Assembly: GCF_006345805.1 (NCBI RefSeq)
Contig: NC_043002.1
Location: 96,782,001-96,846,000 of the forward strand
Direction of reading: 5' to 3'
Length of the DNA stretch: 64,000 bases
Source of the DNA: Octopus sinensis
Lineage: Eukaryota
The notes under the pieces were generated by a model. That model made no database searches. It had not been told where the DNA came from and saw only the letters and a list, made by a program, of their open reading frames with translations. Position numbers and translations under genes: made by a program. Below, piece by piece: positions 1,806 through 25,972 of the stretch. Position 1 is the first letter of the stretch. Every line of letters begins with the position of its first letter.

Positions 1806-1851
<46 letters not shown>

Positions 1852-1957: not shown

Positions 1958-2083
1958 AACTTCTCATTGTTTTCATGTCATCGTTGAGACATGATATTTC
2001 GTCACAATCCTCCATAGATGGGTGTATAACCGTATGTTGTCCGGTACAAAAGCATTTTGCTTGATAGAAACAATCGCTACATT
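1958..2083 (-). CDS. Cys-rich secreted protein paralog 1, exon B (126 nt, phase 1-1): (E)CSDCFYQAKCFCTGQHTVIHPSMEDCDEISCLNDDMKTMRS
   Basis: Acceptor atgtatttcctttacag, donor gtaagt, open frame with 6 Cys; same length and Cys pattern as 25103-25228, same pattern as 52452-52574. Confidence 0.88.
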
Positions 2084-2810
2084 CTGTAAAGGAAATACAT
2101 TTATGAAGGCTTCAAAATAGGTTATCTTCGTTTTTGACGAGGTGGTTCAGTTTATATGGTTTAGCATAAATTCTGCTTGAATTAAATTCCTCCAGTCATA
2201 TTTGAATGTTAGATCTTAGTACGAATGTTAGATGTCGTTAGTGTCGTGATCGTGTGAATTACGAAAGCGCTCATGAGCAGAGGCCAGCAGAGTGGTCAAT
2301 ATTGACACCTTGTTTTCTTTATTATCAACCAAGCGTTCGATAAACAGCTGAAGCGACTTTGAGCCTTAAACGTGCTGGATGATTGACGAACATCACCTTG
2401 GAAAACGTGATAATTAATTTCCAATCAAATATCGATGTAATTAGTATTTAGTAGACATATATTTCACTTTAAACATTTCGACTATATCAATGTCATGCGA
2501 GTAAATTTCTATTGTATTTTCCTTTCAAATTCGCTTACTATTTTCATTCATTTTCTTTAAATATTAATTTTATTTTAGAAATTTAAGTGATGGGGATGGA
2601 TAAGTTATCAACTATTCCTTGAAATGTTCAATGATGTTAGAAGTTTACCGACTTGCAACTAAGAGGGATGCAAATGTTCATGGATATGACGAATACGTGT
2701 TTTACAAGTTACCCGGAAAGAAATGGAACTTTTAAGGGGGTTATATCAGGATCGTATACATCCATCGTGTTCAGTGCAATAGATGATAACGTAAGAATAT
2801 TGAAACTTAC

Positions 2811-2877
2811 CATTGTCACCAAACATATGACATTTAGGAATGATAAGGAAGAACAAAGTTACCGCAAATGTATACAT
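2811..2877 (-). CDS. Paralog 1 exon A (67 nt), signal-peptide-like: MYTFAVTLFFLIIPKCHMFGDN
   Basis: Acceptor ttctttactaacag (TACTAAC branch site), ATG at exon start, hydrophobic core, phase-1 donor gtaagt; same length in paralog 2. Confidence 0.85.
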
Positions 2878-3244
2878 CTGTTAGTAAAGAAGCACAAATA
2901 AAATGTCTCATTATATTCGGCATTTATTTAATATTGTTGCAAAATTCCTACGAAAAGCCAATCATTCAAACAATATTAACATTCAGATATGAGGCTGGTG
3001 ATCGCCTCCGGCATATACACTGTCTCTCATACTTCAGTGGCCGACACTATTATTACGTGTAAAATACAGAGGTAAATGAATGTCACTGTGGCCTAACGGT
3101 AATACTGGGGTATTATGTTGCTGTTGAGGGAAGTTATAACGCTGTGAATGACATATAGAAGTACGTATTATACTTAGCTTAGCGTCGCATGTTACAGAAT
3201 AAATAAAAGAATGTCTAATTTGCTTAGTAATTAATATTCTTTTC

Positions 3245-3365
3245 TCCTCTAGGCACAAGGTTCGAAATTTTGGGGGCTGGAGCCAGTCGATTATATCGAC
3301 CCCAATACGCACCTGGTACTCAATTTATCGACCTCGAACGATGAAAGGCAAAGTCGACCTCGGCT
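3245..3365 (-). mobile_element. SINE family B fragment (gtcgactttgcctttcat-type core)
   Basis: Matches copies at 47540-47715, 47935-48355 and 54370-54560. Confidence 0.75.
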
Positions 3366-4506
3366 GGAGATTACATATATGAAAGCCTTGATACAAAAAC
3401 AGACAAACGTAGCTGTCAGTATAACGTTGCAATCGCGATTACACATTGGAATATATTCATACACTTATGTAGACTTGTATACAGATAGACAGATATATTC
3501 ATAGCTACATGAATATACGCACATATACCCATGTAGACATCAGTGTGCATAAGAATATCTTCATATGGAAGGTAATATATACGTAGCCAGTAACTAGGTC
3601 GTTGTTGTGCGACAAATATCCTGAAGTTTCATCAATTAAACTGAATTTGGTTTTAATAGCCTTTTTGCGTTAGTAATTAGGTAGAAGAATTCGAAAATGC
3701 CAATTATAATGTATAACAACAAAATATAATGGCGAAAACGTAATTCGAACTAGCATCAACTTGATAGAGCATTGCCGGTCACACAGCATTCGACAAACTG
3801 CATGCAGTTCCATTTCAGTTCAACTAAATAAATAAATAATCAAATAAATGATAAAACGCGAATCCCTGGTGGGAAAATTTATAAAAGTAACGCATGAGTT
3901 GCGCGCAAATCTAACAAAAAATTAGTTTTCTAAGAAATGAGTTTTCAGTGTGAGGATTATTGCTGATACAATTGCAACTACCAAACAATACGATATCAAT
4001 CAGAAAGAAGGGCAGAAAGTCACATAGCATGCTAAGTAGGGAGTCTGCAAATTTTACTGGACCTGCTAGAAATATCAGCCAAATCTCCCTAATATCGTAT
4101 TTTATTTCATAAATGATTAGATAAGAGGGAAAGACTATACCTGAAAAAAAAGTAGTAGATGTAACAGCCACAAATAGATTATATTTTGATTACCTTTTTT
4201 CTTTACTTAATCACTGATGTAACTTACATTACAATAATAAATATATGAATAATTATTTTAATTATTTTAAAGTCATATTCCACCTATGAGATAAAATGTA
4301 ATTTTACGCAAAATATATTCTCGATGTGATGAAAGTGTAGATTAATTACAAGGGAAATATATTCCGAAAATCATTATAACATTTCTTTATGTCACTTAAG
4401 TATATAAAAGTATATAAAAAGTATATAAAGTATATAAAGTATATAAAAGTATATAAAGTATATAAAAATGTTAAATTCTAAATTTGCTTCTACGCATGTA
4501 ACTCAC

Positions 4507-4526
4507 CTTGAAATCCTGAACGTGAG
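4507..4526 (-). other. Putative 5'UTR micro-exon, or 3' end of first exon, of paralog 1
   Basis: gatatttcag|CTCACGTTCAGGATTTCAAG|gtgagt; perfect donor, identical at 32276-32295. Confidence 0.55.
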
Positions 4527-4969
4527 CTGAAATATCTTTTTTTGTAAAAGAAGAAAATAATTAGTGTTGTAAAATCTTTCAAAGTTTGCGTTTCGCACCA
4601 TACAGCTGCCGTATGTTGTATATACAAATCGTAAGCATACATTCTCAACATGAATTTCTGATTTATAGCTGTGATATAAATGTTAAGTTTACAATGACAC
4701 GTTTATTGTTAGTTTTATATTAGCGTTTAACACTCTAATTTATAACAATCACATGAAATGGCTTGTAACACAGGAAATTTGAGAGAAATAGGAAAAAAAG
4801 AATTGTTAATGGGGGCGGCTAAACTCCAGTTAGCAGATTCTGTTATGGGAATTCGAGTTTATCTCGGAACATATAATCCTATGTATTATTTAAGATAATG
4901 AGTAATTTCACACGAATATTGGTTGTTATTCTAGAAAGTTGAATGTTAGGATCTTTACCTTTTGACCTA

Positions 4970-5756: not shown

Positions 5757-6576
5757 AACACAGACGACGCACAAATATATATAAATACATATAACAAAGT
5801 GGAGTTGTGGGGTACCGCACGAGTGGAATTATATACGAAAGAAGGTTTGAAAATGCAATTTAAAAGATGTTTATTTACTTTACCGGTTTCACTCTTTGGA
5901 AAAAGATTGTCAAAAGTAACATGTAGAAGTTTGGTTGCGTTAATTATTGCTTGTTACAAATTGCTACATTACATATATACAGTCTTTGGTAACATGGACA
6001 TGTTAAGGACATAAAAAACTTCAACAAGTTCCTTAAAATATTGGGCACAAAAGATTACTACATAAATAATCGTTCTCAAGGACATGCTTAAGATAGTTTC
6101 CAGAAGAAATTGATATTGGTATTGGTATTGTATCTGCATATTCAAACATGCACAGAATATTGGTTGACACAGAGTACTACAATCCATATAAATATACATT
6201 CTTTGGTGACAAGAGCATGTTGAGAATATAAAAAAGTTTAACAAGCTCTTTGAAATAATGGGCACAAAAGATTACAACAAATATATTATACATTCTCAAG
6301 ATAATTTCCAGAAGGAATTATTAAAAAACGTTCAGTATACAGGTACAGAATATTATGAGTTCAAAAAGATTTACATTATAATATTAGTGAAGCCAAAACT
6401 GACCTGTCCGCTATGGTAGTGTAAAAGAATATTGTGTATTTCAAGGGACACAGTAGGTGTGTTTGGTTGTGGGGAAAAGGAGGAGTAACGTGGAACTGAA
6501 AAGAATTTACCCTTTTTTTTGTCTCTCCTTCAAGCATCAATGATTTAGGGGTCAGGATGGGGTGAGTGTGTGTGTC

Positions 6577-6612
<36 letters not shown>

Positions 6613-6837
6613 CATATGTGGTGTGAATAGATGTGTCTGTGTGTCTGTGAGATCTGGTAGGATGGTGTGTGTGTGTGTGTCCTTGTATTTGTCTGGGTGG
6701 CATGTGTGTGTTTATGTGTTTTGTGTGTGTTGGTATTGAGTATGTGTTTGTGTGTGTGCGTATATATGATGCGAGTGTGTGTGTGTGTGTGTCTGTGTGT
6801 TTGTTTAGGATGGGTGCTTGGGAGTATGTTAGAGTAT

Positions 6838-8240
6838 GTTTAGTTGTGGTCTTTATTTTTGAATAAGATTATTTTCCCTATTTATTCGTGTTTGGTCTGT
6901 GGTGTTGTCCGGGTATTGGTATAGTGGGAGAACTAAAAATTTTGGGGACTTATTGTGTGCACAGAGGTCTAAGTGTCCACTTAGTGGTATCTGTCTTGTG
7001 GAGGGGTCCCTCAGTTGTTAGCGGTGAACTGTCATTCTTTCTCTGAGGGTAAGGCTCGTTTGCCCTATGTAGTCTTCGTGGCACCCTTCACACCTTATGA
7101 CGTACAGTAAATTTTTTGATGCGCACGTGAAATTATTTTTTATGATGAATGTGTGTCCCGACTGGAACTTGTACGTCGATCCCTCAATGAGGTGGATGCA
7201 AGTCCTGCAGTTGGGACGACCACATTTTTTAACGGTGGGCGGTGGGCGGTGGGTTTGTGTTGTGTAATTTTGCGTTGGTGAGGAGGTTTTTTAGGGATTT
7301 AGGTTGTCTCTTACTTTTTATTATTTTATGAGCTGCCAGTAATTTTTTTAGGCGTGGGTCTTGATTTAGCTGTGGAATGTTGTATATAATAGTGTAAGCT
7401 TCTGCATTTCTTGGGTTGTGTGTTGAGAGATAGGGGAGGCTATTTACTGTACTGTGGATGTGTTTTGGTTTTCGTAAGTCTTGAGTGTTAATTGATTTGG
7501 CCCGTTCTATTCCGTTGCCCACTAGTGATGCCGGGTAATGTCTTTCGAGAAGAATTGCCCTTAGTTCCCGGAGTCTTCTATTTCGTGTTGTGTCATTTGA
7601 GACAATTGTGCAGATTCTTCTCGCTAAGTTGAAGGGGATATTTGTCTTTGTGTGTTTTGGGTGATTGGAGGTGAATAGAAGGTATTGTTTAGAGTCAGTG
7701 GGTTTGTAATGGATGTCAGTTTCAATGTTGATGCCTTTTTTAATGATTAGAATGTCAAGAATAGGAAGTTGGTCCTGACTATATTCCATTGTGAATTGAA
7801 TGGGATTATTTACACTGTTGTTAAGGTTTTTGAAGTCAATAAGTTGATCGAGTGTGTGGGACCATTGGATGAGGCAATCATCTAAGTAGCGTTTCCAGTT
7901 CTCCAACAGGTATTTGTGGAAAGACTGGCCGTACTTATATTTGGATTTTTCATAAATTTGTGATTCCAGGTAGGCCATCACCAGGTTTGCATAGGTAGGG
8001 GCAACTTTCGTACCCATTGCAGTTCCTGAAACCTGTCTGTAAATGTTATTATTGAAATTCATGAAGTTGTTTTGCAGAATAAATTTGAGGTCCTCAATGA
8101 TGAATTCTTTTTTCATTTTTTCCGGGATCTCATTGGGATATTTATCCAGACAGAATTTAATGGCTTCCAGTCCATATTCATGTGGGATCGTGGTGTAAAG
8201 GTTTATTACATCAAAGGAAACGATTAAAGTGTCTTTATTG
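6838..8240 (-). mobile_element. Penelope-like element, 5'-truncated: RT plus GIY-YIG endonuclease (degenerate)
   Basis: RT motifs SFDVINLYTTIP, GTAMGTKVAPTYANL and WKRYLDD; linker KCGRPNCRTC; GIY-YIG LLYVIRCEGCHEDYIGQT; stops and frameshifts present. Confidence 0.92.
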
Positions 8241-8361
8241 GTAAAGTAAATAAAAAATTTTTAAATTGCATTTTCAAACCTTCTTTCGTATATAAATATA
8301 TATATATAATTTATATAATTTTTTTTCAGAATGAGCTAAAAATCCAAGATCTTACAGATGT

Positions 8362-8479
8362 TTCCAGGATATATAACGTTGGGCTTTTATCAGCCTCCGC
8401 CTACAAAATCCACTTATAAGGATTTTGTCGGCCCGAGGCTATAAGTAGCAGACACATGTGGTTGGGAAGCAAGCTTCTT
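8362..8479 (-). mobile_element. 3' remainder of a family A SINE head (target of the Tx1-like array)
   Basis: Minus strand reads aagaagcttgcttcccaaccacatg...tagcctcgggccgac...gtggattttgtag, matching the SINE A head. Confidence 0.8.
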
Positions 8480-11400
8480 TATTTCATAAACTGGCTATGG
8501 AAGCCGTATATAGATGGGACAAACAATGACATACAAACATAGAAGGTGAAGAAGTTGCTTATTACGAATGAAATAGTTTCGAATGATAAAATATAAATGT
8601 CATGTTGTTAAAAATTATATCTTACTCCACTTTTAAAAATTCCAATATAAGCTTGATGACTGAAGGAAAGGCATCCAACCGCCAGGTTCGAACCTCTACT
8701 TTTCCTTCTGGCCCCACTTACCTGGTTCCAATCACTCGAAGCTTGTTCACTACTTGCTTCCATCTTTTCGCGAATATATCTGTGACAGATATCTCTTCTC
8801 CAGCCTGATCTTGCTAACGAGGTGGTAATTAAAGAAGTTAACCAAGCCCTGGCCGGAGACGAACGTACCTGTCATCAAACCTTTTACATGCGTCTTCCAT
8901 ATTGTTTCTTTCAGTATGGCTTCTATGCAGAAAACAACAAGCCTTTCTTTCCCTGTTAAGAGAAGGTGGTGTCACAATCTTGATAAGAGACTCAGCCGAT
9001 AGCTGTACTCTTCCCATCGTTGACAACAGATGCTCGACAAATTTATCTGTCACGATAATTCCGGACACTTCACGAAGGCGTGCAAGTTAGTTAGTTTCTC
9101 TGTTCCGCCCGAGCCTCGGGCATGTCGGCGAGACGACACCTCGGTGCCTTGACAGCTGGTCTCGCACAGGCAAAGCCAAAAGGTAGTACTGTTAAGCCAG
9201 AGATTTCTGTTAATTATCCAGATATTCCAGCCCAAAAGATCTCCTGAACATGTTGATCAACTAATTTCCATCGAAGCCCAGGGTCCTGGACATCGTCTGA
9301 CATAAATTCTGGACATAAATTCCTGGACATCGTCTGACATAAATTCCACTGACCCGCTATAGAAATCCGCAGTGGAACTCCTGCTGCCGGTATTGCTCAT
9401 CCAAGTTGCCAGACCCTCAGCTTAGGTATTCGTTTGATCTATGGACCAATGTCCATTAAGGATGTCAACTGTGGAAGGTAGAACCTTACGTGCGGTAACC
9501 ACACCTGTTCTCCATCCAGGTAAAGCCAGAGGTGCCTCAACCTTAACGCAAATTTTCGCATCCACAGCCAGGCATCCCTAGCACACCTTTTAGCGGTTTT
9601 TGGTAGTAGACAAAGCGCTTCACAAGTGGCTTTCCTCCCTTCCACAAAAAAAACGTAAGAGGGTTCTTTCCAACTTATTCAGCCACAAATCAGGGCAAAA
9701 CACAACGGTTAGGCGGTAGGTGATGACATGCTATGAACATCTGCCTGGAATAGCGCAGGTTTGTGCCTTTCCGACAAGTCTGTCCACAACACGCACCAAC
9801 CTTTTTGCCAACACCTTGGCCAATGTCTTTAACTCTGTGTTTAACAGAGTTATGGGCCGAAAATTACATATGATATCCCCCGTGCTCGGGTCCTTTCTGA
9901 TCAATGTCATCACCCCCAGCTCACAGATCTGAGAATTCTCCCATTCTGCTGCCAGTTGGCGTAGACGCTGGTCAGTGGGTGCCCAAACAAACCTGGCATA
10001 CCTTTGTAAAACTCATAGTGTAGACCCGGCGATTTATCCCCGGAGCACTCGGATAGCGCCTTGATCACCTCCGAGGCTGTAATCGGCCCCGACAGCACTC
10101 AGCTTCTCGTGGCAAGAGACGCAGACTACCAGCCAGGAAGTCCCGTAAGGTCTCACCATGGTCTAGCGTCCCACTCCTCCCGAACAACTCGGCGAAGTGC
10201 ATGTAAAATGCATCACACATCTCCTATCCTTTGACCAAACGTCCATCTTCGCCTATCAAAGTCTTGATCATGGCCACCCGGCAACATTAATTCCTTCGCG
10301 GCCGAATTGCACGTACTTTAGCCCGAAACCGGCATCCCTCATGTTTGGTTTTGAGATGACGGTCCAATGCCGTTCTCGCTGTCAAAATTTGGCATACAGA
10401 GCCAAATGTCAACGCCGATTCTAAAGCCTTAAGGAGATTCCCTTCTATCTTAGCCTTATCTAAACTTAACTGACGGCTAAATCTAACAGACTCAAAACGT
10501 ATGGCTATTTTTCGGTCAAACCACCGCCGGTTATTCACCACGGTGCCGGTTAATGCTCTTTTCACTAACTCCTTAATCCGTCACGGTATGTCTCACTGGT
10601 CAAATTAGAATTATTCAGCTTCTAGTAGCCGGATCTCTGCATATAGGCATTATGTTCAGCCTACACAGTGGACAGCTAAACCTAGACTTATCTAATCCTT
10701 ATAACTATCCTGTCTATGTAAAACTTGTGCTTCCCATCGCCATTCATCCAGGTCCACACTGCTACGCTCGAGTTCTCAAGTTTGTAACGACCTACCATTG
10801 TCTAGGATGGTTATTGTGCATAGGATATAACATTGTGGTGTGACGCTATCATATCCTTAGTGTATGGTATTTGTCCTTTGAGTCGAACTCGACCAAAATT
10901 CGTCTTTCGACTGTTTTTTTTCTGGGACGGTTGGGTGGTTTTTTTTAATATTTGAATTGTATTTTCTGTTTTTGTGGAGGATGTGGACGGGGATCGTGTC
11001 AACGTTCTTTTGGTCGGACCTCGAACAACAGTGTACTCCTCTTGGACTGTCTCCATAGTGTGTGTATGGGTTTGGGAGCAGTTTTTTGTTGTTTTGGTTT
11101 GTGAGGGTTAGGTGTATGTTTCTTCACAGGAGTTTGGGCCTTTACATTCTCTTCCTTTTTTCGCGTCGCAATCAACACTTATGTGGCCTTTTCGGCCACA
11201 TTTAAAGCATCTGGGGTTTTTTGCCCTCCACATGAATTTTGAGAGCCATGTCCTCGCCCACAAGCACTCCGTCGGAAATCCTTTCTATGTCTCCTGGTGC
11301 CGATTGAATGATGGCTACAATGCTCTGCCCGAGCCAATTTTGGGAGCAGAGCGTGTTACTTGTAGGATATTAATTTTATCTTCCCTGTGAAACAACAGGA

Positions 11401-11950
11401 CGGACTCATCCACGCGGCATCAACCTCCGGTGGTACCTCTATCACTCTAACACGGGATGTGCGTCGCTCCTTTATAGGTTGGCAGGAGGACCACTTCCTT
11501 TGTCTTCAACGGGTTGACAGCCGTCTCTGTTGTTCTGAATCTGGCTTCTATTGTGCCAAATTACCTTCCTCCTGTTATATAGCTAATATCTTTCCATATG
11601 GGTGCCAGGCATTTTTCAGTTTTATTCTGTTCCATATGTTTCCTTTTTTTCTTCTAGGTAGAACGCTTTGAATATAATTGTATTTTATCTCTGCTGTTGT
11701 GTTGGTGGGAGGTGATATTTTTACTTCACTCTCCTCCTCTGTCATTTTTTTAAACATTTCCTGGAGTTCCCCAACCGGGATCTCCAGATTTTCCATCTGA
11801 ACAATTCAGGCCTTCACAGCTTTCTGCCCGGCGCCCCTCCATTAAACAAAAGGGAACACGTCATACTGCTAAGACAACCAAACAACACGCATGTTATTCA
11901 CAAGACCGCAGTGGAACTAAACAAAACGCTATGCCTGGAGCGTGCTTCTT
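8480..11950 (-). mobile_element. Degenerate L1/Tx1-clade non-LTR retrotransposon (ORF1 CCHC knuckle plus fragmented ORF2)
   Basis: ORF1 remnant EGKKPRCFKCGRKGHISVDC (~11170-11230); ORF2 remnants GPITASEVIKAL..SGDKSPG, NFRPITLLNTELKTLAKVLAKRL, AQTCAIPGR; 3' end atgaaata followed by the target motif. Confidence 0.85.
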
Positions 11951-13658
11951 TATTTCATTGGCCATAAAAGCTGTACATAGAGGGGAGAGCACAGAGTGAG
12001 GACAAAAAAAAATGAAAGGAAAAGATGAATTTAACATAATGAAAAACTGAAATGAAGCCGTTCGACTCCATCTCCGAGAGACTTCATTAAGCATGTTAAT
12101 ACAACCCTCTTTTTGAAAACATTTATTTTAAACTATCATTGATATTGCCTTTGTGACAGCTACTTTTCATTTTTAACACAAAATGTTTATCTTAAACTTT
12201 ATAAAAATAACAACCCGTTCTGGCATTGTACTGGTGTCTATCCCCTTGACCCATCATTCATAGTCACAGTTTTCCTCATAATTCTTTAATTTTGAAAGGC
12301 ACCCCGGGTTTGGCATCATACAGCTTATGTACCCAAGCAACCCCTTCAATTTTGTTATATCCACTTTTATGACTCTATTTCGCGAGTTTATCTCCTTATC
12401 AAGTTTTTCATTTCCCCCATCGTTCAGTAAAATATATTTTTCATTACCGGGCAAGGGTGGGGAAATTTGGGGCTCTTGCGTGCTTTTGCTTTTCTTTATG
12501 TCAGGTGGGGCATGGAGAGGGTTGGTGTTTGTAAGGAGTGGTTGGGGCCGAGTGAATGTGGGTGGGAGTCGGGCAGGTATGGGATGAGGGTCGTCATTTG
12601 CAACGTATACGCTTTTTCTTTCTTTTTTTCTTCCCAGCCACTTCTCATCCATTCCTTTCCTCGTTCACTTCCTCCTCCTCCATGCTGGTACTAGGTACTA
12701 GTTTTCGTCGGTGACGTCTCAATTTCCCCCATTCTCTTGTTTCCCTTTATCCTTCACGGGTGGTGGAGAACAGTCCGTTCTAATGTAGCCTTTGAGGTCA
12801 CATTTATAGCACCGCGGGATCCTTCCTTCCACTCTAACTCTAAGTGTTGCCTCTCCGACCGTGATGGTCTCGACTATCTTTTCAATATCCTCCTCTTGTA
12901 CCACCATATCAAGGCTTTGTCCTTGCCAGTTCCTGAGGGGTGTTCTGGTGGCCTGGAGGACTACCGCCTTCTCCATGCTTGGCAGTATGGCAGCTACCAG
13001 CCAGGCTACATCCACTTCTGGGAATATTTCTTCCGCGCTAACCCTGGAAGCACGTCTCCCAATGTATACGGGTAGAAGAAGCAATTCATCAGTTTTTAAT
13101 TGTGTGGTTGAGTGCAGTCTGGCGATAGCTATCTCTTGAAACTGCACTTCCACTGTTCCGTACTTTCTTCCCATGGCAAGGTAGGATATCTCTTGCCAGA
13201 CTAGCCGTAATGCGTTTTCAACTTGTGCCTCTGACACCGCTTCTATTTTCCTTGTTGCTAACGCGTATGTCCTGTAAACAATCGTTTTCTCTTGCTTATC
13301 CTTTCAAACTTCTTTAGGGTGGGGGACAATTTCACGGCGTTCCTCTCCCTCTGATGCATTTCCACGAACTTGCTCAGCTCTTCTAGATTTATATCTTCAA
13401 TTTTTCCCTTTGCCACTGCAGTGTAATTGCTTGTTTCTATTGCTGCCTCAATCTTGTTCAAACATTTCACCATTTCTTCCTGAGACGACACAAATTCTGA
13501 AGAAGTATAATTTAAATTCTCACAGCTCACCACACGACGCCCCTCCATTAAACAAGAGGGGAAATCGTCGCACCGCCAAGACAACCAAAAATCACATGTG
13601 CTATTCACAAAGACAGCTGTCGAACTAAACAAAACGCAATACCGGAAGCAAGCTTCTT
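11951..13658 (-). mobile_element. ORF1-only (HAL1-like) Tx1/L1 derivative
   Basis: ORF 12719-13237 ends EGRIPRCYKCDLKGYIRTDC; no RT; leader and 3' end homologous to its neighbours. Confidence 0.8.
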
Positions 13659-15724: not shown

Positions 15725-16191
15725 TTATTATATATTTATTACATATATATGTATACGATCGTATATTGTATATTGTATGTATATATATATATATATATGT
15801 ATTTATGTTTCTCTCTGCGTATATTCCACTGATGAGGCAAAGCATTTCTAAATGCAAAGCCAGAAATCCGGGATTAGGAATTATCCAGTAATTTTTTACT
15901 AGATAAGTTTGTCTTTGTGTCTTCTCTCCTTGTGCTATTAGAACACTTAAGGTAGTTTTAGAGTGAGATCCTGGCTGCTATTTTCAGCCTGGCGGTATCT
16001 CGTATATACCCTAAGTTATAATTTTAATAATATTATTACCTTTGAAGGTTTTTAGTTCCATGCCGGCCACATTATCAGATAGTCCATTTAATTTAAATAA
16101 CGATCTTATCCTTATATAATAATATATATATATAATATATAATATAATCTCAGAGCGAGTTTTATACACAGTAGCGTAACACATCATGAAT

Positions 16192-16463
16192 CATATTTGC
16201 CTTTTGAATATGGCTAACTCCCTAAGGGTGATGCTACTGTAGTTTTGTAGCCCCAGAAGATATCTCCTCCAGCTGGCTATAGACACACTACTGTGTTCCT
16301 CTCATTATCTGTGAAGGGAAGTCATCGGGGATAATGACTTCCCTTCACATATACTGAGAGGACAAAGATAGTGTGTCTATAGCCACTGGAGAGATATCTT
16401 CCTGGGCTTACAACTACAGTACAATCCACCCTTAGGGGTTAGCCATATTCAAATGGCAATATG
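16192..16463. mobile_element. ~270-bp fold-back MITE
   Basis: Near-complete palindrome centred on gaagggaagtcat-cggggata-atgacttcccttc. Confidence 0.85.
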
Positions 16464-16766
16464 CGTCCACTATATATTATATATATTATATATATATATA
16501 TGATATATTAATATATATATATATATATATATACAGACAGACAGACAATATACTCATACATACGTACGAAATTAAGTATGTGCTAGTATGTTATGAGTAG
16601 ATATTGAATATACGATTGCTAGATTGTGCAATCAGTATTAAAAAAAAAACCACTCCGTACTTTCACGTTAAATAGAGGATTGTACATGTATAATAGCAAG
16701 AAAGAGTAAGTCAAAAGTCAATATTTGTAGCATGGATATAACACTGATTTCCATACCCCATTATAC

Positions 16767-16782
16767 TTTATTCAAGTTTATT
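16767..16782 (-). terminator. Two AATAAA polyadenylation signals of paralog 2
   Basis: tttatt at 16767 and 16777, about 60 nt downstream of the stop codon. Confidence 0.6.
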
Positions 16783-16838
16783 CTGTTTATAGTATACAGA
16801 TTAAAGAGATTAAAGAATGCTAAACATGAAATTTTCGT

Positions 16839-16906
16839 TTAGCATTCAATTCGATCCTTATAGACCAAATAGTCATCTTCCGCAAAATTATGATCTACTC
16901 TGCAAA
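16839..16906 (-). CDS. Paralog 2 terminal exon D (68 nt): (V)CRVDHNFAEDDYLVYKDRIEC*
   Basis: Acceptor TACTAACaaattatattttctgttacag; only the phase-1 frame is open; same 68 nt and C-x19-C* as 46814-46881. Confidence 0.88.
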
Positions 16907-16963
16907 CTGTAACAGAAAATATAATTTGTTAGTAGAAAATTGCGTCACATTTTCGTTTCATTT

Positions 16964-17634
16964 TGGAAAAAAATACTAACTCTTATAAGATGCTTAGAAT
17001 TTTCTGAACATTAGTAGTATGCCTGGAATAAAATACTAACTCTTATAAGATGCTTAGAATTTTCTGAACATTAGTAGTATGCCTGGAATAAAATACTAAC
17101 TCTTATAAGATGCTTAGAATTTTCTGAACATTAGTAGTATGCCTGGAATAAAATACTAACTCTTATAAGATGCTTAGAATTTTCTGAACATTAGTAGTAT
17201 GCCTGGAATAAAATACTAACTCTTATAAGATGCTTAGAATTTTCTGAACATTAGTAGTATGCCTGGAATAAAATACTAACTCTTATAAGATGCTTAGAAT
17301 TTTCTGAACATTAGTAGTATGCCTGGAATAAAATACTAACTCTTATAAGATGCTTAGAATTTTCTGAACATTAGTAGTATGCCTGGAATAAAATACTAAC
17401 TCTTATAAGATGCTTAGAATTTTCTGAACATTAGTAGTATGCCTGGAATAAAATACTAACTCTTATAAGATGCTTAGAATTTTCTGAACATTAGTAGTAT
17501 GCCTGGAATAAAATACTAACTCTTATAAGATGCTTAGAATTTTCTGAACATTAGTAGTATGCCTGGAAAAAAATACTAACTCTTATAAGATGCTTAGAAT
17601 TTTCTGAACATTAGTAGTATGCCTGGAATAAAAT
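16964..17634. repeat. 60-bp minisatellite, ~11 near-identical copies
   Basis: Unit aaatactaactcttataagatgcttagaattttctgaacattagtagtatgcctggaata; one variant unit; stops in all six frames. Confidence 0.97.
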
Positions 17635-18212
17635 ATATAGTTGAAATATCGAAAGCAATACCATTATTAAAATTCGACAATATATTTGCAAAAGTTGGTA
17701 CTTCTTCGTGCATACACCTATCGTTTATTTTACACACCACACTCCAAACTATATTGGATACCTTTACATTTGAATCTTGCTACCACACACGCACACACAC
17801 ACTCACACACATACACCATGAAATAAATGCAACATTTACATAAAAGCTACACTAAATTTCATGCTTAAATAGAAAAATAATAATAAGTATACTATCTGAT
17901 CATATTACTTTCCGGAGCCTGAAACTTATAGTAGCTCAAATGTCATTTCTGCGTTTATTTAAAAGATATTTATGTGCCACTGGATGGACTACATTTTAGT
18001 ACTACTACTATTACTAACATCATCACAATAACAACCATCACCACCACCATCACCGTTACCGCTGCAACTGTTGATACCATATATATTACAAACATCTATT
18101 GGATAGAAAATTACTATCTGTAAATCACACCACAAGAGATATTCAGCAACAGTACTTTGGAGTAAAGATTAGTTTCCAACATAACATGCCAGTCCTGGTT
18201 TAGTGCGAATAT

Positions 18213-18426
18213 TGTTGTAATTTAGCCCCAGCTGGCTATACGGCACGATCTGTGTCCTTATATTTTCGAACAAAGGGATCTGTCAACCTCACTCGGAAAT
18301 CGCGATACACATATTGTTTTGAGCTGAGTGTGTGTGCTAGAATCCGTTCTTCGAAAGCATAAGGACACAGATCGTGTCGTATAGCCACCTGAGGACGTTG
18401 TCTCCTGCGGCTAAATTACAGCAACA
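18213..18426. mobile_element. Fold-back MITE related to 16192-16463
   Basis: Inverted arms gttgtaatttagcc...ggctatacggcacgatctgtgtcctta. Confidence 0.75.
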
Positions 18427-18542
18427 TTCGTCTTAAACCAGTACTGCCATGTTATGTTGGCAAATAATCTTTACTCCATTTATTGGATAGACGAAAAAAT
18501 GAGGCAAAATGAGAAGGGAATAAAGTATTCGAAGCAACATAC

Positions 18543-18662
18543 CTTGATCATACGTTACCGAACCTTCTGTTACTTTACAGTAAAGTTTTACACAACGAAA
18601 GTTATAGGTACCAAATGCAAATTCGTCACTGCTCAAACATTGTCCGTCAGTGTCCTTGCAGA
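18543..18662 (-). CDS. Paralog 2 exon C (120 nt, phase 1-1): (F)CKDTDGQCLSSDEFAFGTYNFRCVKLYCKVTEGSVTYDQ
   Basis: Acceptor attacattactttcag, donor AG|gtatgt; homologous to 51806-51937. Confidence 0.9.
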
Positions 18663-18686
18663 CTGAAAGTAATGTAATTGTATGTA

Positions 18687-18773
<87 letters not shown>

Positions 18774-18780
18774 TACATCT

Positions 18781-19190
18781 AATGTAGGATAAAAAATTTT
18801 CGAAAAAAATTCTATCAATGGTCAGCATATTAAAAAATACCATTAAAGGTTAAATTTATAAACACGTCTCGAGATGGGCTAGGGAATTTCTATTTTGGAT
18901 ATATTTGGGGTACTTAATTGTGCTCATGACTTAGTGTTTGCTTCTTCCATGGGTATAAGTAAGTATTTCACTTATTTCTTTGCCGCATTTATCACTCATG
19001 AAGAGAAGGTTCTTATGAACTAACTCTGAAATCGGGTCCGACATGGTAATAACGGGATTTTTTAGAAATTTCTGTCGGCTTTCTTCGAGACGCGTGCTTG
19101 TAGTGATAAATTAGGTGGTTATTGACGTTGTGTCGATTTTCGGAATATTTTGGCATTAAAAATGTTTTCTTTTGCCCTTACTTATAAATT
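18781..19190 (+). mobile_element. Interspersed repeat family (taatgtagg.taaaattttt...ttttgccctt)
   Basis: Related copies at 33081-33245, 41850-42122 and 42296-42570. Confidence 0.7.
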
Positions 19191-19224
19191 ATATATAAAT
19201 ATACTTTTGTGTTTGTGTATCATA

Positions 19225-19646
19225 GGTGCAGGCGTGCCTGTGAGGTAAGGAGCTTGCTTCCCAACCACGTGGTACTGCATTCACTCCCACTGCGTGGAAA
19301 CCTTAGGCAAATTTCTTTTACTGTAGTGCTCGGCCCGATCAAAGTCCTGTGAGTGGATTTGGTAGATGGAAACTGAAAGAAGCCTGTCGTATATATACGT
19401 ATATATAAATCTATGTGTGTGTGTGTTTGTTCTCCCAACCCCAACCGGTGTTTGTGTGTTTATAACCGATGTTGGTGATAGCCACAAGTGTTAGTGTACT
19501 TGCGTCCCCGTAAGTTAGCGTTTCGATAAAAGATACCGATAAAATATGTATCACGCTAAAAAATAAGTACTACAGTCGATTAACTCGACTAAAAATTTAG
19601 GACCGTGCTCTAGCATGGCCGCTGTCTAATGACTGAAACGCGTAAA
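19225..19646 (+). mobile_element. SINE family A
   Basis: Aligns to 448-848. Confidence 0.85.
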
Positions 19647-20078
19647 TGATGAAACTTAAATGAATGAGAAAAGAACATGGAATTAGATAGTGGCCTTCAC
19701 TAGCTTTCAGCTGTTACTGCAATGGCACGTTGTGGCTTCACATTTCAGTGCTTGTGTGTCACAATATAACTTCAACAATGAACAGCGATTTTATTTGGGA
19801 AGGCAAGACTTCTGTGAATATATAAACGCTTAAACAAATGAAAGTGCACCTCATTTTGAAGCCGAGATGAAGCTATAGAATGATACACAAACACTTCATT
19901 ATGAGTGAATTATATTTGATATGAGAAATAATTGCAAAATAATGACGGTCATTATATTGATTTCATGATCCCTTGTCACTTATTTAAGTTTTCATTACAT
20001 GCTCTAACTGACTAACGGTTTTTCTGAAGTTTATCTATAATGAATTCTTACGCCAGATTCTTAGAATCTCTATGCCTA

Positions 20079-20151
<73 letters not shown>

Positions 20152-21143
20152 TAGTACGGATGGTTGTCAACTTTGTTCTATGGAAACTTATAAAATTTTG
20201 AAATATCAGAGTAATACAAATCTGTTGAATAACCGTTTGGATTTGGGAGTATCTTGTATACATCGTACAACCCGAACGTTTAAATACTTTAAATAATAAT
20301 TTTGTGAATATTCCTATATTTTTCAAATTGTAATTCTTTATAATCAAATAAGAAGGAATATACCATACTGGCTTTCAATTTAACATTCATAGATGACTAA
20401 AAAAATCTTCACTGCAAACTTGAAATTGAATTATTTTTTCTAAAATTAAACTGGCTTTAAAATTAATAAGGCTTTCCCTCAGTTAAAAAGTACTATGCCT
20501 ACTCGTAATAAGTGATAGTTTTTTTTTCTCCAAATTGCACTCTCTGTGAATGTGATAGTGACCATATGACATTGACCTAGTTCTCTCATCAAATAGTAGT
20601 AATTGGAATTTAGTAGTGAGAATTGTCTTCCTCATGAATTCCTTTTATGGAGTTCTGAATCCCCCTTTACCCCATTTCTACAATTAGAAAATCTTTATTA
20701 CTTACTTCTCCCTCTCACAAACTTACAGCAGTCTGGAACAATCAAATCTTAGTCAGTCAGTGGAGGGACTCCAATACTTCATATGTTCTTAAAATTTAAA
20801 TCCACATCTTTGTCTATAAATCTACCTTCTCTATAATGTTGCCACTTGATTAAAAAATGTTTGTATTAATGGAAAACCTCTATAATTGGCTGATGAGTAC
20901 TCAGCATCTTAAATCTGTTGTAACACTTACAACATTTAATAAAATGATGTAGTACGAAACGATCGTACCAAATTACCGGAGTCATTCTTGTTGCTTATTT
21001 TGATTATAATCACCCCACGGATTTTTATGGATAACACCATACAAAATTCTGGTGCATTTAAATTAAGTACCATATTACTTTGAATCTAAATTTTTACATA
21101 CATATATATATACATGTATATATATATATACATACATATATAT

Positions 21144-21208
<65 letters not shown>

Positions 21209-21279
21209 CATATATATATATAAATATACATATATATATATATACATACATATATATATATACATACATACATATATAT

Positions 21280-21316
<37 letters not shown>

Positions 21317-21550
21317 ATCAATATAGGGTGGCAAAAAATTTTGTAGAATTTTTTTGCCACCAGCGGCCTAGTGGGAAAAATTAAATAGTCATAGACCATT
21401 TTTAAGTTCAACATCAAACAGTAGATGAAACGGTGCATCGTATAAGAAATTACAGGGTAAATGTTTTTTAATTTTCTCCTGGTTTATTTTGCGGTTGAAG
21501 CTTTGGCTGTTATTTCTAGTGGGTGAATGGCCTATTATAGCCGTTCCTTG

Positions 21551-21618
<68 letters not shown>

Positions 21619-21850
21619 TTGTATACTGTCAACTTAACGTGACATTAAGGGATTACACCACTGCTGTTTAGCCCTAGTGAGCATCGACGCTTCCTGTCGG
21701 CTTCGACACATTTCCTGTGTTCTTATATATTTACGAAGGGGAGACAAATACCCCCAACAGCTAGGCCTGCATCTAGAGACACGCATGTTTCAGGGTCCTT
21801 GCTCATCATCGGTCTAGATTAGCAGAGGCCTGCCAGCTGAAGATGAAATC

Positions 21851-23100
21851 TTTATTATAGGCACGATGGCCCGAATTAAGAGGGGACATTACAAAACAGG
21901 ACATGGGGTACATATAATAAAAAAAATCGAAAAGTATGGTATGATAATGAATTATTGATAATGGGTTAATGGATTGTCTTACGAGTTCCCCAAGCTCGCA
22001 GTTTCATTTAAAATACAATTTTGTTATACTGGGCGTTCATCTGTAATGTGATCGAGTAGCCTCTCCTGGTCTACAATAGCTGGCAAACTGTCATAACGGA
22101 TATATTGCATTACGCATACAGCCGAAAACACACTTTTCAATTTCATCATTGTCTCTTTTTCCACAATCGCCGCCTTCACTTGATGATCAAATATTTTTGG
22201 GTTCAACTTTACTCTGATTAAACTTTTCTTATTTGCTAGCTTCTTTTCAGTTTATTTGTCCTTCATGTACAATATTACCACTTTGAGATTTTTTTCCCTT
22301 GGGTCTTCCTCCTTCCTTACATACTTTTAACTGCTCTTCTACTCTTCTGTCCCATTCTTCCCCTGCCTTTAAATTTGCCGGTTCTCTCGCTTTCGCTTCT
22401 GCATCCTTCTCTTCGTACGTTCGATCCTCCATCTCGTCGGTAGTCTTCTTTTTCGTTTTTTTCTTTATTTGTACTTTAGGTTGTGATTCCACCCGCGTTC
22501 TCTTTCTATCTTCTTTTCCTTCTGTTCTTTACTTTTCTTCCTCCTTCACCAACTCGTCACCACTTTCCACATTATCTGTATTCACAATTTCTTCTTCTAC
22601 ATCCGTCATTTGCAATTCCTCTGTCAGAGCCTCCAATGTTATCATCTCCTCTTGTATTTTTTTTCGGACACACATCCTTCATATGGCCTCTAATCTTACA
22701 TGTGTAGCACACTTGGGGTCTCCCCTCTACCACGACTCTGAGTCGTGTCTCGTCAGGGAACACCAACTCTTCTGGAATGTTATACATGTCTGGCAAGGTT
22801 ATGTGTACCAACGCTTGTACTGCATAACCCCAGCACTTTACTTCCTTCGACCTTTCTATCTTCAATATCTCGACATTCTCCTTGCAGTTAAATATTCTTG
22901 CTGCTATAATTCGCTCCATTTTCAACTCTGGTGAAATTTTGCTGATTCTTATTCTCACCGCTCGTCTTCCACAATAGCTAGGTAGTAATAGCCATTTTTC
23001 ATTTTTCAATATTTTTGTAGCGTTCTTCTTTGCTTCAGCTTCGTTCTCAAAATGATCTACCACCTCTATTATAGCTTTTTCTTTAATCTCCTGCAAACAC
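21851..23100 (-). mobile_element. ORF1-only L1/Tx1-like element (5'-truncated)
   Basis: ORF 22572-23096 with LLLPSYCGRRAVRI and EGRPQVCYTCKIRGHMKDVC; 3' end tgtcccctct...aataaa resembles the array elements. Confidence 0.78.
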
Positions 23101-23122
23101 CTCTCAGTGGAACACTGACCTA

Positions 23123-24575
23123 TGCTTTTCTCTTATCCCCCTGAACCCGCCCTGCAGTCTCCTGCCTCCCTTTTCTCCTCACCTATCACCCCACCACCCT
23201 ACCTCTCCAACTCACCATTCTCCGAGCTTTCCAGCATCTCCAGTCCGACCCATTTACTTCACACATCTTCCCTAACCGACCCCTCCCCTCCTTCAATGGA
23301 GCCCACAACCTACGAGACCTCTTGGTCCACAGCTTCTTCCCCAACCCTACCTCCCAACCAGGCTCATTCCCCTGCTCCCACCCACGCTTCCGCACTTGCC
23401 CTTACCTCTCCAACACCACCCTCCTCACCGGCACCCATCATTGACCCTATCGCATCACCGACTCCTTCACCTGCACTTCTAACAATAACATCTATTGCAT
23501 CTTCTGATCTCTCTGCCATTCTCTGTACATCGGATAAACGGTACGCCACTTGGCTGACCGGTTCGCGGAACACCTCCGAGGCATCCGCCAGTCTCACGCC
23601 GATGACACCCCGGTCTGACGCCATTTCCACTCTACCGGTCACTCTTTGCAACACTTGTCCGTGTTCGGATTGTCCTTGCATAAAGGTCATCTGGGCTCCC
23701 GCTTGCGCCGTGAACAGGGATTAATCTTCTCTCTTCGCTCCTTTATGCCATATGGCTCAACTCTCCACCCCTCTTCATCTAACCTCCTCCCTTTGCCTCT
23801 CTCCACCTCCTCTTCCCTCCTACTTCCTCCCACCCACCTTTCCTCTCTTGCTACGACTCCTACTTCTCTTCACCTCTACTCTCTTTCTCTCTTCTCTCTT
23901 ACTCTCTTTCTCTCTTCTGCCATACCTTCCCCTTCCCCCTTCATCGTCAACCCTTACCCATAAGCGCACCCACCCCTACATATTCTTGCTCCAACTTCCC
24001 TATCCTTCCCATCCCTTACACCCTCTCCTACATACCCACCTCTACCCCAACCCTCAGCCTAACCCACACCCCATCCGTGCTTTCCCCACTCTCGCCTTCC
24101 CCCTCCTCCCAACAGCATCACACCACACCACACAACACCATAACACACTACACCATACCACAATACACATCACATCACAACACACCAACCACACACCAGC
24201 ACTGACCAATTCCCATCCCCACATTTTCACAACTACACATACACACACGCACACGTCAAGACCACCAGCCCTTTTCCACACGCACATACGTACTCTCTTA
24301 CGCACACGCGCACCTTCGTTTTGGGGATCACCTTTACTTTGTTACCTCCCCTACTTCTTCGCTCTCGTGTGTGACACTTCTGTCCGGCATTCGCCATGAT
24401 AGATCGGTAGCCACTACACACATTTTATTCTCTCCTTGTTTTTTCTGTGTTCCTTTCTGTGGAAGAGCCTAGGCTCAAAACGTCAAATACTTTTTCAATT
24501 CCTGAGCTTTATAGTTATACATCTGCTTGTTTTCTACACCACCTGTCTTCATCTTTTGTTTTTTTCGTGAATTCT

Positions 24576-24580
<5 letters not shown>
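23123..24580 (+). mobile_element. Penelope-like 3' fragment: degenerate GIY-YIG domain and terminal region
   Basis: GSFPCSHPRFRTCPY...FTCTSNNNIYCI..LCHSLYIG*T.RHLADRFAEH; terminal motif ctgtgga-agagcctaggctc-aaaacgtc. Confidence 0.85.
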
Positions 24581-24654
<74 letters not shown>

Positions 24655-25102
24655 TACATATATATCTTCTTTCATCGTGTTACACCGATAGTTCCAATAT
24701 CTCTCTCGGTTTTTCCTCTCATCAGTTTCTGGCAAAGCGCGTATGCTCGAAGCGTCAAACGCTTTTCCATTCTTCCCGTACGCCAAACTAATATACCTGC
24801 TTGTTGTTCCCTCATCTGTCTTTGTCTTTTTGCTGTACATATGTTATCCTCATCGTAATTTAATCCACTTACATCCCTAATTAATTATCTAGGTGCTATG
24901 AATGATTATGTAGCAAGATCAAAATATGTTCATTCATAAATTTAGAACACGCTACAAGAACGAAACTGAAAGCTCGTAGCATGAGTCACATTCTTCATTA
25001 AATATGTAAGGTATTCAGGCATAAGAACATAACCAATAGCTAAATCGTCTGATATGAAAAATGTGAAGAAAGTATATGTATTAATTACTGCTTTTTACTT
25101 AC

Positions 25103-25228
25103 AGCTTCTCATTGTTTTCAAGTCTTTGTTGAGACATGATATTTCGGCACATGCATCCATTCTTGGATTATTGCGCGTATGTTCTCCGGTACAAAAGCAT
25201 TTTGCTTCATAGAAACAATCGCTACAAT
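25103..25228 (-). CDS. Paralog 2 exon B (126 nt): (D)CSDCFYEAKCFCTGEHTRNNPRMDACAEISCLNKDLKTMRS
   Basis: Acceptor tttcctttacag, donor gtaagt; lies within ORF-track 25095-25340. Confidence 0.9.
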
Positions 25229-25905
25229 CTGTAAAGGAAATACATTTATGAAGGCTAAAAAATAGGTCATTTTCGTTTTTCACGAGGTGATTCAGTTTAT
25301 ATGGTTTAGTACAAATTCTGCTTGAATTAAATTCCTCCAATCATATTTGAATGTTAGAGCTTAGTAAGTGTCGTAATCGTGTGAATTACGAAAGCTAATA
25401 TTGACACCTTGTTTTCTTTATTATCAACCAAGCGTTTGATAAACAGCTGAAGCGACTTTGAGCCTTAAACGTGCTGGATGATTGGCGAACATCACCTTGG
25501 AAAGCGTGATAATTAATTTCCAATCAAATATCGATGTAATTAGTATTTAGTAGACATTTCGCTTTAAACATTTCGACTATATCAATGTCATGCGAGTAAA
25601 TTTTTATTGTATTTTCCTTTCAAATTCGCTTACTATTTTCATTCATTTTCTTTAAATATTAATTTTATTTTAGAAATTTAAGTGATGGGGATGGATAAGT
25701 TATCAACTATTCCTTGAAATGTTCAATGATGTTAGAAGTTTACCGACTTGCAACTAAGAGGGATGCAAATGTTCATGGATATGACAAAAACGTGTTTTAC
25801 GTGTTACATGGAAAGAAATGGAACTTTTAAGGGGGTTATATCAGGATCGTATACATCCATCGTATTCAGCGCAATAGATGAAAAAGTAAGAATATTGAAA
25901 CTTAC

Positions 25906-25972
25906 CGAGTATAGTTTTCATAACAACTTTGGGAAGGATTAGGACGAACAATGTTACCGCAAATGTATACAT
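25906..25972 (-). CDS. Paralog 2 exon A (67 nt), signal-peptide-like: MYTFAVTLFVLILPKVVMKTIL
   Basis: tactaacag|ATG, phase-1 donor gtaagt; exons A-D splice to 381 nt, i.e. 126 aa plus stop, with 12 Cys. Confidence 0.87.

Follow-up and report, generated by a model that had tools for sequence, protein, structure and literature searches.

The window analysed here, a 64,000-nucleotide (64-kb) stretch of Octopus sinensis DNA (contig NC_043002.1, positions 96,782,001 to 96,846,000), carries on its minus strand three head-to-tail members of an unnamed cysteine-rich family, paralogues 1, 2 and 3 (coordinates below refer to the whole window). Paralogues 1 and 2 combine a fixed cysteine framework with two short hypervariable segments of coding sequence, a pattern that is real and non-neutral. 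The best explanation, to which we assign a probability of about one half, is that these segments are islands of divergence in a duplicate locus partly homogenised by gene conversion.

Comparison of the window with itself reveals paralogue 1 (4745..1849) and paralogue 2 (32512..31128 and 26312..24994) as one duplicated unit in two blocks, 1849-3238 against 24994-26312 (88% identity) and 3416-4766 against 31128-32533 (89% identity), the copies being spaced 23-28 kb apart and arranged head-to-tail. Coding exons A and B and the hypervariable patches within them are located as follows (nt, nucleotides; a slash marks a splice site).

2811..2877, minus strand: exon A of paralogue 1, ATG and predicted signal peptide, 67 nt, phase-1 donor G/GTAAGT; MYTFAVTLFFLIIPKCHMFGDN
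2084..2810, minus strand: A-B intron of paralogue 1; a 181-nt central run, 2690..2510, is identical to paralogue 2
1958..2083, minus strand: exon B of paralogue 1, 126 nt, six cysteines (Cys), donor T/GTAAGT; (E)CSDCFYQAKCFCTGQHTVIHPSMEDCDEISCLNDDMKTMRS
2811..2832, minus strand: patch A of paralogue 1, codons 16-22 and the first base of codon 23; 15/22 nt differ
2001..2030, minus strand: patch B of paralogue 1, codons 41-50; 14/30 nt differ from paralogue 2
25906..25972, minus strand: exon A of paralogue 2, with patch A at 25906..25927; MYTFAVTLFVLILPKVVMKTIL
25103..25228, minus strand: exon B of paralogue 2, with patch B at 25146..25175; (D)CSDCFYEAKCFCTGEHTRNNPRMDACAEISCLNKDLKTMRS

In both copies the acceptor ctaacag immediately abuts the start codon of exon A (ctaacag/ATG), so that an upstream exon is required. 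Exon A is 67 nt long in both, encodes a hydrophobic, signal-like peptide and ends in phase 1 at G/GTAAGT; after an A-B intron of 727 nt in paralogue 1 and 677 nt in paralogue 2, exon B opens behind a tttacag acceptor, extends for 126 nt with six Cys and ends at T/GTAAGT. Between the copies, exons A and B show no indel, no stop codon and no change of splice sites. That exon B ends at the GTAAGT donor, as the first-pass annotation of this DNA had it, is confirmed by the Octopus vulgaris protein CAI9723911.1, which is spliced there to two more exons. A read-through of exon B to a stop codon six bases past GTAAGT, which would give 66 amino acids with 7 Cys, was dropped because the O. vulgaris protein uses the donor and the two further exons.

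The annotation had claimed that the exons of the two copies diverge much faster than their introns, and the counts bear this out. Coding sequence differs at 41/201 nt and the intron at 27/677 nt (Fisher p = 4e-12); against all aligned non-coding DNA of the segment, with 62 differences at 1118 sites, the excess gives p = 2e-10. In the figure of 201 nt, exon B is counted as far as the read-through stop; once spliced, the two exons make up 193 nt, and all 41 differences lie within these. Exon A (2877..2811 against 25972..25906) accounts for 20 differences in 67 nt; as had been described, KTIL stands in place of FGDN and the hydrophobic core is kept, codons 1-15 differing at 5/45 nt. For exon B (2083..1958 against 25228..25103) the earlier count of 21/126 nt was reproduced exactly, with 12 codons carrying an amino-acid change and one purely synonymous, and the six Cys codons (TGT, TGT, TGC, TGT, TGT, TGT) are indeed identical between the copies. 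The intron flanking exon B carries the reported 5 differences in 100 nt on the 3′ side, and 8 in 100 nt on the 5′ side.

As the neutral yardstick that the annotation took it to be, the intron does not hold. Three sequences were aligned over 2634 ungapped sites, namely paralogue 1, paralogue 2 and the O. vulgaris orthologue of paralogue 2, a sample of one paralogue pair and one orthologue whose locus reaches window position 6564. At 142 sites paralogue 2 agrees with O. vulgaris, at 28 paralogue 1 agrees with paralogue 2 and at 25 paralogue 1 agrees with O. vulgaris; because the first class dominates, the duplication is older than the split from O. vulgaris, and because the other two are about equal, there has been no large conversion since the species split. 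Paralogue-specific differences are unevenly distributed over the non-coding DNA, from 0 to 12% (chi-square 65.6, 15 degrees of freedom, p = 2.7e-8). In intron 1 they reach 3-4% in one part and 11-12% in two others; the promoter, the exon of the 5′ untranslated region (5′UTR) and the middle of the A-B intron show 0-1%. Divergence from the orthologue, by contrast, is about 2% throughout, with marginal heterogeneity (p = 0.04). Since this mosaic reaches 11-12%, the introns do not date the duplication.

Within the A-B intron, paralogue-specific differences fall from 6.7% at up to 120 nt from an exon to 1.4% further off (p = 0.0013), and orthologue differences are flat across both zones (p = 1.0). 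The 181-nt identical run has a permutation p of 0.003. Over the central 437 sites of the intron (roughly 2690..2204, more than 120 nt from either exon) the three sequences lie at similar distances from one another, with 9, 8 and 11 differences; divergence from the orthologue is a normal 1.8% there, and the paralogue-specific value is 1.4%. The centre thus appears to be unconstrained and to coalesce much later than the rest, as interlocus gene conversion would produce. Intron similarity explained by gene conversion was an outcome that the annotation had named as counting against its own view, and the contrast between exons and introns on which it relied is probably inflated by conversion.

The exons themselves have hardly moved since the split. 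Between paralogue 2 and its O. vulgaris orthologue, exon A differs at 4/67 nt (three of the changes non-synonymous), exon B at 1/126 (synonymous), exon C at 0/120, exon D at 2/68 and the A-B intron at 14/677, and 36 of the 41 exon differences between the paralogues belong to the class in which paralogue 2 equals O. vulgaris. The patches were thus present before the species split. The mature domain has been static since then, exons B and C of paralogue 2 having changed at 1/246 nt, and no ongoing rapid evolution is seen.

Measured against the most diverged non-coding tracts (68/600), the coding sequence at 41/193 is still in excess (p = 6e-4); exon A alone remains elevated (p = 1e-4), and exon B alone, at 21/126, does not differ significantly (p = 0.07). 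The residual excess is due to the two patches, which hold 30 of the 41 exon differences, 16/24 nt in codons 16-23 and 14/30 nt in codons 41-50. Patch A straddles the junction of signal peptide and mature chain, taking in the C-terminal end of the former and the first residues of the latter; its codon 23 is finished by 2083-2082, which adds one difference, and the Met18 codon is the sole one kept. Patch B corresponds to the Cys4-Cys5 loop and one further residue, the one that follows Cys5. Together the patches are 56% different (30/54 nt), with transversion-biased differences spread 9/11/10 over the three codon positions, whereas the exons outside them differ at 11/139 nt (7.9%), never at a second codon position, and look like ordinary constrained coding DNA at background divergence. 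Among 30-nt windows of the 2.6-kb alignment, the top two are coding, with 17 (2841-2812) and 14 differences, and no non-coding window exceeds 7. Within patch B, 14/30 nt separate paralogue 1 from paralogue 2, and 14-15/27 separate either of them from paralogue 3; outside patch B the corresponding values are 6/93 between paralogues 1 and 2 and 49/93 against paralogue 3. The part of the protein that bears the patches has a net charge of -6 in paralogue 1 and -1 in paralogue 2, and the patches may form an interaction surface through which the two copies have different partners.

A single event could have created each patch: a more distant family member elsewhere in the genome would have supplied the sequence, by template switching or by gene conversion over a short tract, with the conserved sequence flanking the cysteines serving as anchors. 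Several features would be accounted for by import of this kind, namely replacements that exactly match the length of what they replaced, a divergence within the patches that is at saturation and equal to the distance from paralogue 3, an exon ratio of transitions to transversions (8:33) close to or below the 1:2 expected of unrelated sequence, and an increase in both synonymous and non-synonymous divergence. It is nevertheless distinctly unlikely in our judgement: a scan of the 64-kb window alone, not of the 32-kb O. vulgaris locus, with up to 3 mismatches allowed, found nothing that could have served as donor of any patch version, of which there are four, paralogue 3 is unlike either version, and the rise of intron divergence towards the exons would be unexpected if tracts were confined to the patches. 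A micro-inversion as the origin is unsupported, with p = 0.77 for patch A and, for patch B, a weak 15/23 match (p = 0.026) that is unconvincing after two tests. It is also conceivable, if quite improbable, that the octopus family swaps short cassettes wholesale, at the mature N-terminus and one inter-cysteine loop, through a dedicated mutational or recombinational mechanism; templated patch exchange or targeted error-prone repair would then generate diversity of binding surfaces in the manner of antigen-receptor or contingency loci rather than by point substitution.

The duplication that gave rise to paralogues 1 and 2 predates the O. vulgaris split; under the favoured model of divergence islands, interlocus gene conversion would later have homogenised much of the duplicated unit in patches, the centre of the A-B intron included. 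The near-identity of the promoter and 5′UTR exon would be maintained by conversion or by constraint. Patches A and B, which are by now diverged to saturation, would have escaped homogenisation or have been driven apart. Selection for different binding surfaces would have kept or created these islands, while the cysteine scaffold and the remaining exons have stayed at background. We infer gene conversion as the probable cause of the mosaic and selection as the probable cause of the islands. The patches could have originated as old divergence protected from conversion, in an adaptive burst after duplication or by import in one step, three routes that the data do not separate.

Several observations weigh against this model. 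The case for conversion is drawn from uneven divergence among three sequences, in which no donor-recipient tract is delimited; the two lineage-specific classes, with 28 and 25 sites, are about equal and give no sign of conversion later than the species split. The near-identity of the promoter and 5′UTR could be explained by constraint. The oldest non-coding tracts differ by 11% and the patches by 56%, which requires either acceleration or an origin older than the surviving tracts. Paralogue 1 may be a truncated duplicate, because collinear homology ends 110 nt past exon B and the window does not contain its exons C and D. No test shows selection directly, pairwise dN/dS (the ratio of non-synonymous to synonymous divergence) being 0.33-0.73 and not different from 1, and both copies are known here from DNA sequence alone.

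The rates were estimated from one paralogue pair, so that the power of the dN/dS tests is low. The method of Nei and Gojobori gives dN = 0.227, dS = 0.313 and a ratio of 0.73 (0.70 for codons 23-66). Pairwise maximum likelihood under GY94 gives an omega of 0.33-0.51 with a kappa of about 0.3, and the likelihood-ratio test against omega = 1 is non-significant; for codons 23-64, the spliced exon B, omega is 0.33-0.46 and likewise not different from 1. The first-pass annotation had named a dN/dS at or below 1 as evidence against its proposal, and these values are of that kind. Its statement that the exons diverge "almost only non-synonymously" stands as a count of codons and fails as a rate (dS 0.313, dN 0.227). 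Many changed codons carry two or three differences, third positions included, and five differ at all three positions, so that synonymous change is raised as much as non-synonymous change. Synonymous differences (9.25 at 36.2 sites) exceed those in non-coding DNA (62/1118; p = 2e-4), and non-synonymous differences (32/162 sites) exceed those in the intron (27/677; p = 4e-10) and in all non-coding DNA (p = 2e-8). The exons have 8 transitions to 33 transversions, whereas non-coding DNA has 38 to 24 (p = 4e-5).

A recent duplication dated by introns of about 4% divergence, followed by fast point substitution of the exons under diversifying selection in the style of toxin, immune or reproductive genes, would account for the non-synonymous excess over the intron and over all non-coding DNA, and for fixed Cys codons next to changes in the loop and the N-terminus, the majority of which alter charge. 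Genes of conotoxins and of scorpion toxins are documented cases in which introns are conserved and the exon of the mature peptide evolves fast (PMC3862624, PMC2651877). We consider this account possible but unlikely. The dN/dS is at or below 1 with dS as raised as dN, patch differences fall equally on the three codon positions with five codons changed at all three, and the non-coding mosaic of up to 11-12% deprives the introns of their use as a clock. An increase of intron differences towards the exons is not predicted by selection on point mutations in the protein, and exons B and C have changed at only 1/246 nt since the O. vulgaris split. What survives of the positive selection first proposed is the fixed Cys codons, the focus of divergence on the loop and the mature N-terminus, and the fact that these are real spliced paralogues; a dN/dS above 1 does not.

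The octopus genes are like those of conotoxins and scorpion toxins in that the core of the signal peptide is conserved, the Cys framework is fixed and its codons are identical, divergence is focused in an inter-cysteine loop, introns are more alike than exons and the spectrum is rich in transversions; the signal, cysteine and loop pattern of conotoxin-type genes is found here, with 5/45 nt differing in codons 1-15 and 14/30 in codons 41-50. The octopus genes differ from them in having no sequence or Pfam relationship and no pro-region, in spreading the 12 Cys of the protein over three exons, and in a dN/dS that is not above 1. Their hypervariability is limited to two patches of 24-30 nt and does not extend over the whole mature region, and it takes in part of the signal peptide, at its C-terminal end. 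Searches of Pfam and of PDB by sequence and profile detected nothing homologous to conotoxins, or to a known toxin superfamily or framework, and no sign of toxin identity was found for the protein.

A locally targeted, error-prone mutational process acting on mature-peptide segments would raise synonymous change, would produce the transversion bias (exon kappa about 0.3; 8:33 as against 38:24 in non-coding DNA) and would cluster differences as multi-nucleotide changes. A mutator mechanism was reportedly once proposed for conopeptides, by Conticello and colleagues in 2001. These features are equally expected from saturation or patch import, the stasis of exons B and C since the split (1/246 nt) speaks against a continuing process, and we know of no targeted error-prone mechanism in cephalopods, so that this explanation is extremely improbable.

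The favoured model of islands under conversion has counterparts in the "peak of divergence" signature, in which selection preserves functional differences between duplicates against conversion, as in the opsin genes for red and green, which lie 24 kb from each other, and in RHCE/RHD; the model of Teshima and Innan for selected peaks of divergence in duplicates under conversion is reviewed in PMC3924837. The octopus genes resemble these systems in being tandem copies about 24 kb apart with low divergence in the flanking introns, and in having sharp peaks at short coding segments that decay with distance. They differ in that the octopus paralogues are overall no closer to each other than orthologues are; paralogue 2 groups with O. 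vulgaris, which indicates that conversion is mostly older than the species split. They differ also in that the octopus peaks are saturated blocks of several codons and not one or two substitutions, and in that conversion is inferred. If the patches are selected islands, they would mark the functional surface of an uncharacterised, octopus-specific family of secreted proteins, and would provide a clean, small cephalopod example of neofunctionalisation under gene conversion. For young tandem duplicates in general, a divergence of exons above that of introns should not be read as positive selection before conversion of the introns and multi-nucleotide replacement in the exons have been excluded.

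Paralogue 1 is represented in the window by exons A and B; its exons C and D were not found inside the 64 kb, and they may lie past the window start or may not exist. The homology of the two copies in the same orientation stops 110 nt past exon B. The end of this collinear homology is marked by a segment of 270 nt that lies 3′ of exon B in both copies in opposite orientation (1529-1801 and 24391-24665, 85% identity), and which arose either by a small inversion after duplication or because one element inserted twice independently. It could be that one of the copies, with paralogue 1 the most plausible candidate, is a decaying partial duplicate under relaxed constraint or without function, its exon differences being neutral. 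A dN/dS not different from 1 and the missing exons C and D would fit such decay, and the retention of the open frame is not significant, since 41 substitutions would avoid a stop with an estimated probability of about 0.15. Neutral decay, however, cannot outrun the local non-coding rate, and the patches differ by 56% as against 11% at most; there are no indels, stops or splice-site changes, all Cys codons are kept, and second codon positions outside the patches are unchanged. Relaxed constraint is therefore very unlikely in our view. An artefact of assembly collapse was ruled out, because the copies differ at 175 of 2636 aligned sites and carry different transposable-element insertions, and because an independent O. 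vulgaris assembly has the same structure of paralogue 2.

The family was delimited with a HMMER profile of the three exon B peptides of the window, which found one true relative, the O. vulgaris protein CAI9723911.1 (E = 6e-20). This is UniProt A0AA36AYH6, a "hypothetical predicted protein" of 126 amino acids with 12 Cys, encoded on chromosome OX597819.1 of assembly GCA_951406725.2 by four coding exons with all introns in phase 1. Paralogue 2 is 96% identical to it, paralogue 1 is 70% identical over exons A-B, and paralogue 3 is 33% identical. A word-indexed protein search, made with paralogue 1 and with an alignment of the three peptides, returned no candidate although CAI9723911.1 is part of the collection searched, so that its negative outcome carries no information. 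The O. vulgaris locus (L001; OX597819.1:22,612,986-22,645,369) is collinear with window positions 35994..6564 at 93-97.5% identity, and this collinearity and similarity place the source of the window very close to O. vulgaris. O. sinensis and O. vulgaris split 2.5 million years ago (PMC10700109), and an intron divergence of about 2% from O. vulgaris would fit that date. As the orthologue of paralogue 2, CAI9723911.1 has the four coding exons and the collinear locus in common with it; it differs in belonging to another, very closely related species or lineage, with an intron divergence of about 2%, and is unnamed and uncharacterised.

Paralogue 2 has within the window every coding exon of a gene of the CAI9723911.1 type, four in all, together with the phase-1 splice sites and poly(A) signals. 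The remaining parts of paralogues 1 and 2 are the following.

4661..4666, minus strand: TATAAA box of paralogue 1, read in the sequence, inside a tract about 99% identical to paralogue 2; a promoter role is probable
4507..4636, minus strand: non-coding first exon (5′UTR) of paralogue 1; the 3′ end, CAAG/GTGAGT, is firm, and the 5′ end is placed tentatively, about 25-30 nt past the TATA box
32430..32435, minus strand: TATAAA box of paralogue 2, read in the sequence
32276..32405, minus strand: 5′UTR exon of paralogue 2, with a tentative 5′ end
26313..31127, minus strand: 4.8-kb insertion in intron 1 of paralogue 2, with none in paralogue 1; it contains a reverse transcriptase (RT) open reading frame (ORF) of a CR1-like long interspersed nuclear element (LINE) at 28737..29912
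18543..18662, minus strand: exon C of paralogue 2, 120 nt, four Cys, phase 1-1; (F)CKDTDGQCLSSDEFAFGTYNFRCVKLYCKVTEGSVTYDQ; 120/120 nt are the same in O. vulgaris
16839..16906, minus strand: coding part of exon D of paralogue 2, two Cys and stop (V)CRVDHNFAEDDYLVYKDRIEC*; AATAAA follows downstream at 16781 and 16771

The predicted architecture of the gene is thus a 5′UTR exon and four coding exons, with all coding introns in phase 1, and the predicted precursor has about 126 residues with a signal peptide and 12 Cys. The Cys framework is 6 + 4 + 2, with C-x2-C-x5-C-x-C-x12/13-C-x4-C in exon B, C-x6-C-x14-C-x4-C in exon C and C-x19-C-stop in exon D. Exons B-D have the same phases and the same residue boundaries in paralogues 2 and 3, and paralogue 1 has exons A and B alone inside the window. 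Paralogue 3 (52574..46814) retains the exon phases and all 12 Cys at 33% identity, and its exons are as follows.

53277..53367, minus strand: tentative exon A of paralogue 3, signal-peptide-like, with a phase-1 donor; IALYLLLVISSIVADVNA...
52452..52574, minus strand: exon B of paralogue 3, C-x2-C-x5-C-x-C-x12-C-x4-C, its framework and phase-1 boundaries shared with paralogues 1 and 2
51806..51937, minus strand: exon C of paralogue 3, four Cys, with 49% identity to the peptide of exon C in O. vulgaris
46814..46881, minus strand: exon D of paralogue 3, C-x19-C-stop, with the spacing and the ag/TT TGC start of paralogue 2

At position 53367 paralogue 3 has cag/ATA where paralogues 1 and 2 have cag/ATG, and there is no in-frame ATG further upstream in the exon; either the start codon lies in an upstream exon or the start has been lost.

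The family is apparently confined to octopuses, and its members would be orphan, disulfide-rich proteins that are probably secreted, to judge from their signal-like peptides. No Pfam family matched the octopus proteins at E up to 10, no sequence relative was found in PDB with either a single sequence or a profile, and a metagenome scan for relatives of the family found none. The accession and the sequence strings of CAI9723911.1 have no mention in the literature searched. An AlphaFold2 model had a mean pLDDT (predicted local distance difference test) of 39.6 and was unusable. Hits of the HMMER profile to bacterial HYR_4C proteins (PF23237) were rejected as spurious, because their scores are sums over up to 20 repeats. 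These proteins of Bacteroidota are alike in having repeated C...C segments that weakly fit the profile many times; they differ in being bacterial surface proteins, and the octopus protein does not match the HYR_4C Pfam model even at E up to 10.

The window is AT-rich and rich in microsatellites and transposable elements. In the LINE of the insertion in paralogue 2, the RT ORF (28737-29912) is open over 391 amino acids, and its database matches are distant CR1-like elements of birds and turtles. Two blocks of the insertion, 28651-29847 (about 1.2 kb) and 27223-28033 (about 0.8 kb), are missing from the locus in O. vulgaris, which reflects either a deletion in O. vulgaris or a more complete or recent element in the window. 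The last intron of paralogue 2 holds on the minus strand a minisatellite (16964-17743) that ends about 60 nt upstream of exon D and repeats a 60-nt unit about 12-13 times in tandem, with 99-100% identity between the repeats; in O. vulgaris the unit occurs once, at the same place (about 22190-22250 of L001), so that the array expanded in the lineage of the window after the species split.

Copies of a short interspersed element lie at 3234-3364, 47536-48340 and 54376-54568; they have the core 'TTATCGACCCC...GGCAAAGTCGACC' and are 71-88% alike, most of them above 76%. The copy at 3234-3364 is inserted in intron 1 of paralogue 1 and is missing from paralogue 2. Trinucleotide arrays of the ATC/ATG and TAA/TAG types occur at 51978-52418, in the B-C intron of paralogue 3, and at 35150-35700 and 40100-40310; the His-, Asp- or Val-rich ORFs of 130-180 amino acids within such arrays are spurious and were not taken as genes. 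The GC-richer block 6564-15136 (8.6 kb, 39-45% GC) has internal repeats, 11814-12128 and 13520-13861 among others; its ORFs include a weak RT frame (7229-8116) and gag-like ones that bear a CCHC-like motif. O. vulgaris has the block too, at 95%; the annotation there places across it, on the other strand, a gene of 66 residues, the only neighbouring annotated gene, which extends past the end of L001. Finally, two pairs of inverted repeats with 91% identity, 37077-37606/38266-38773 (530-nt arms) and 5017-5200/5280-5459 (184-nt arms), and a tandem duplication of about 520 nt with 95% identity, 41705-42224/42145-42678, are probably transposable-element structures.

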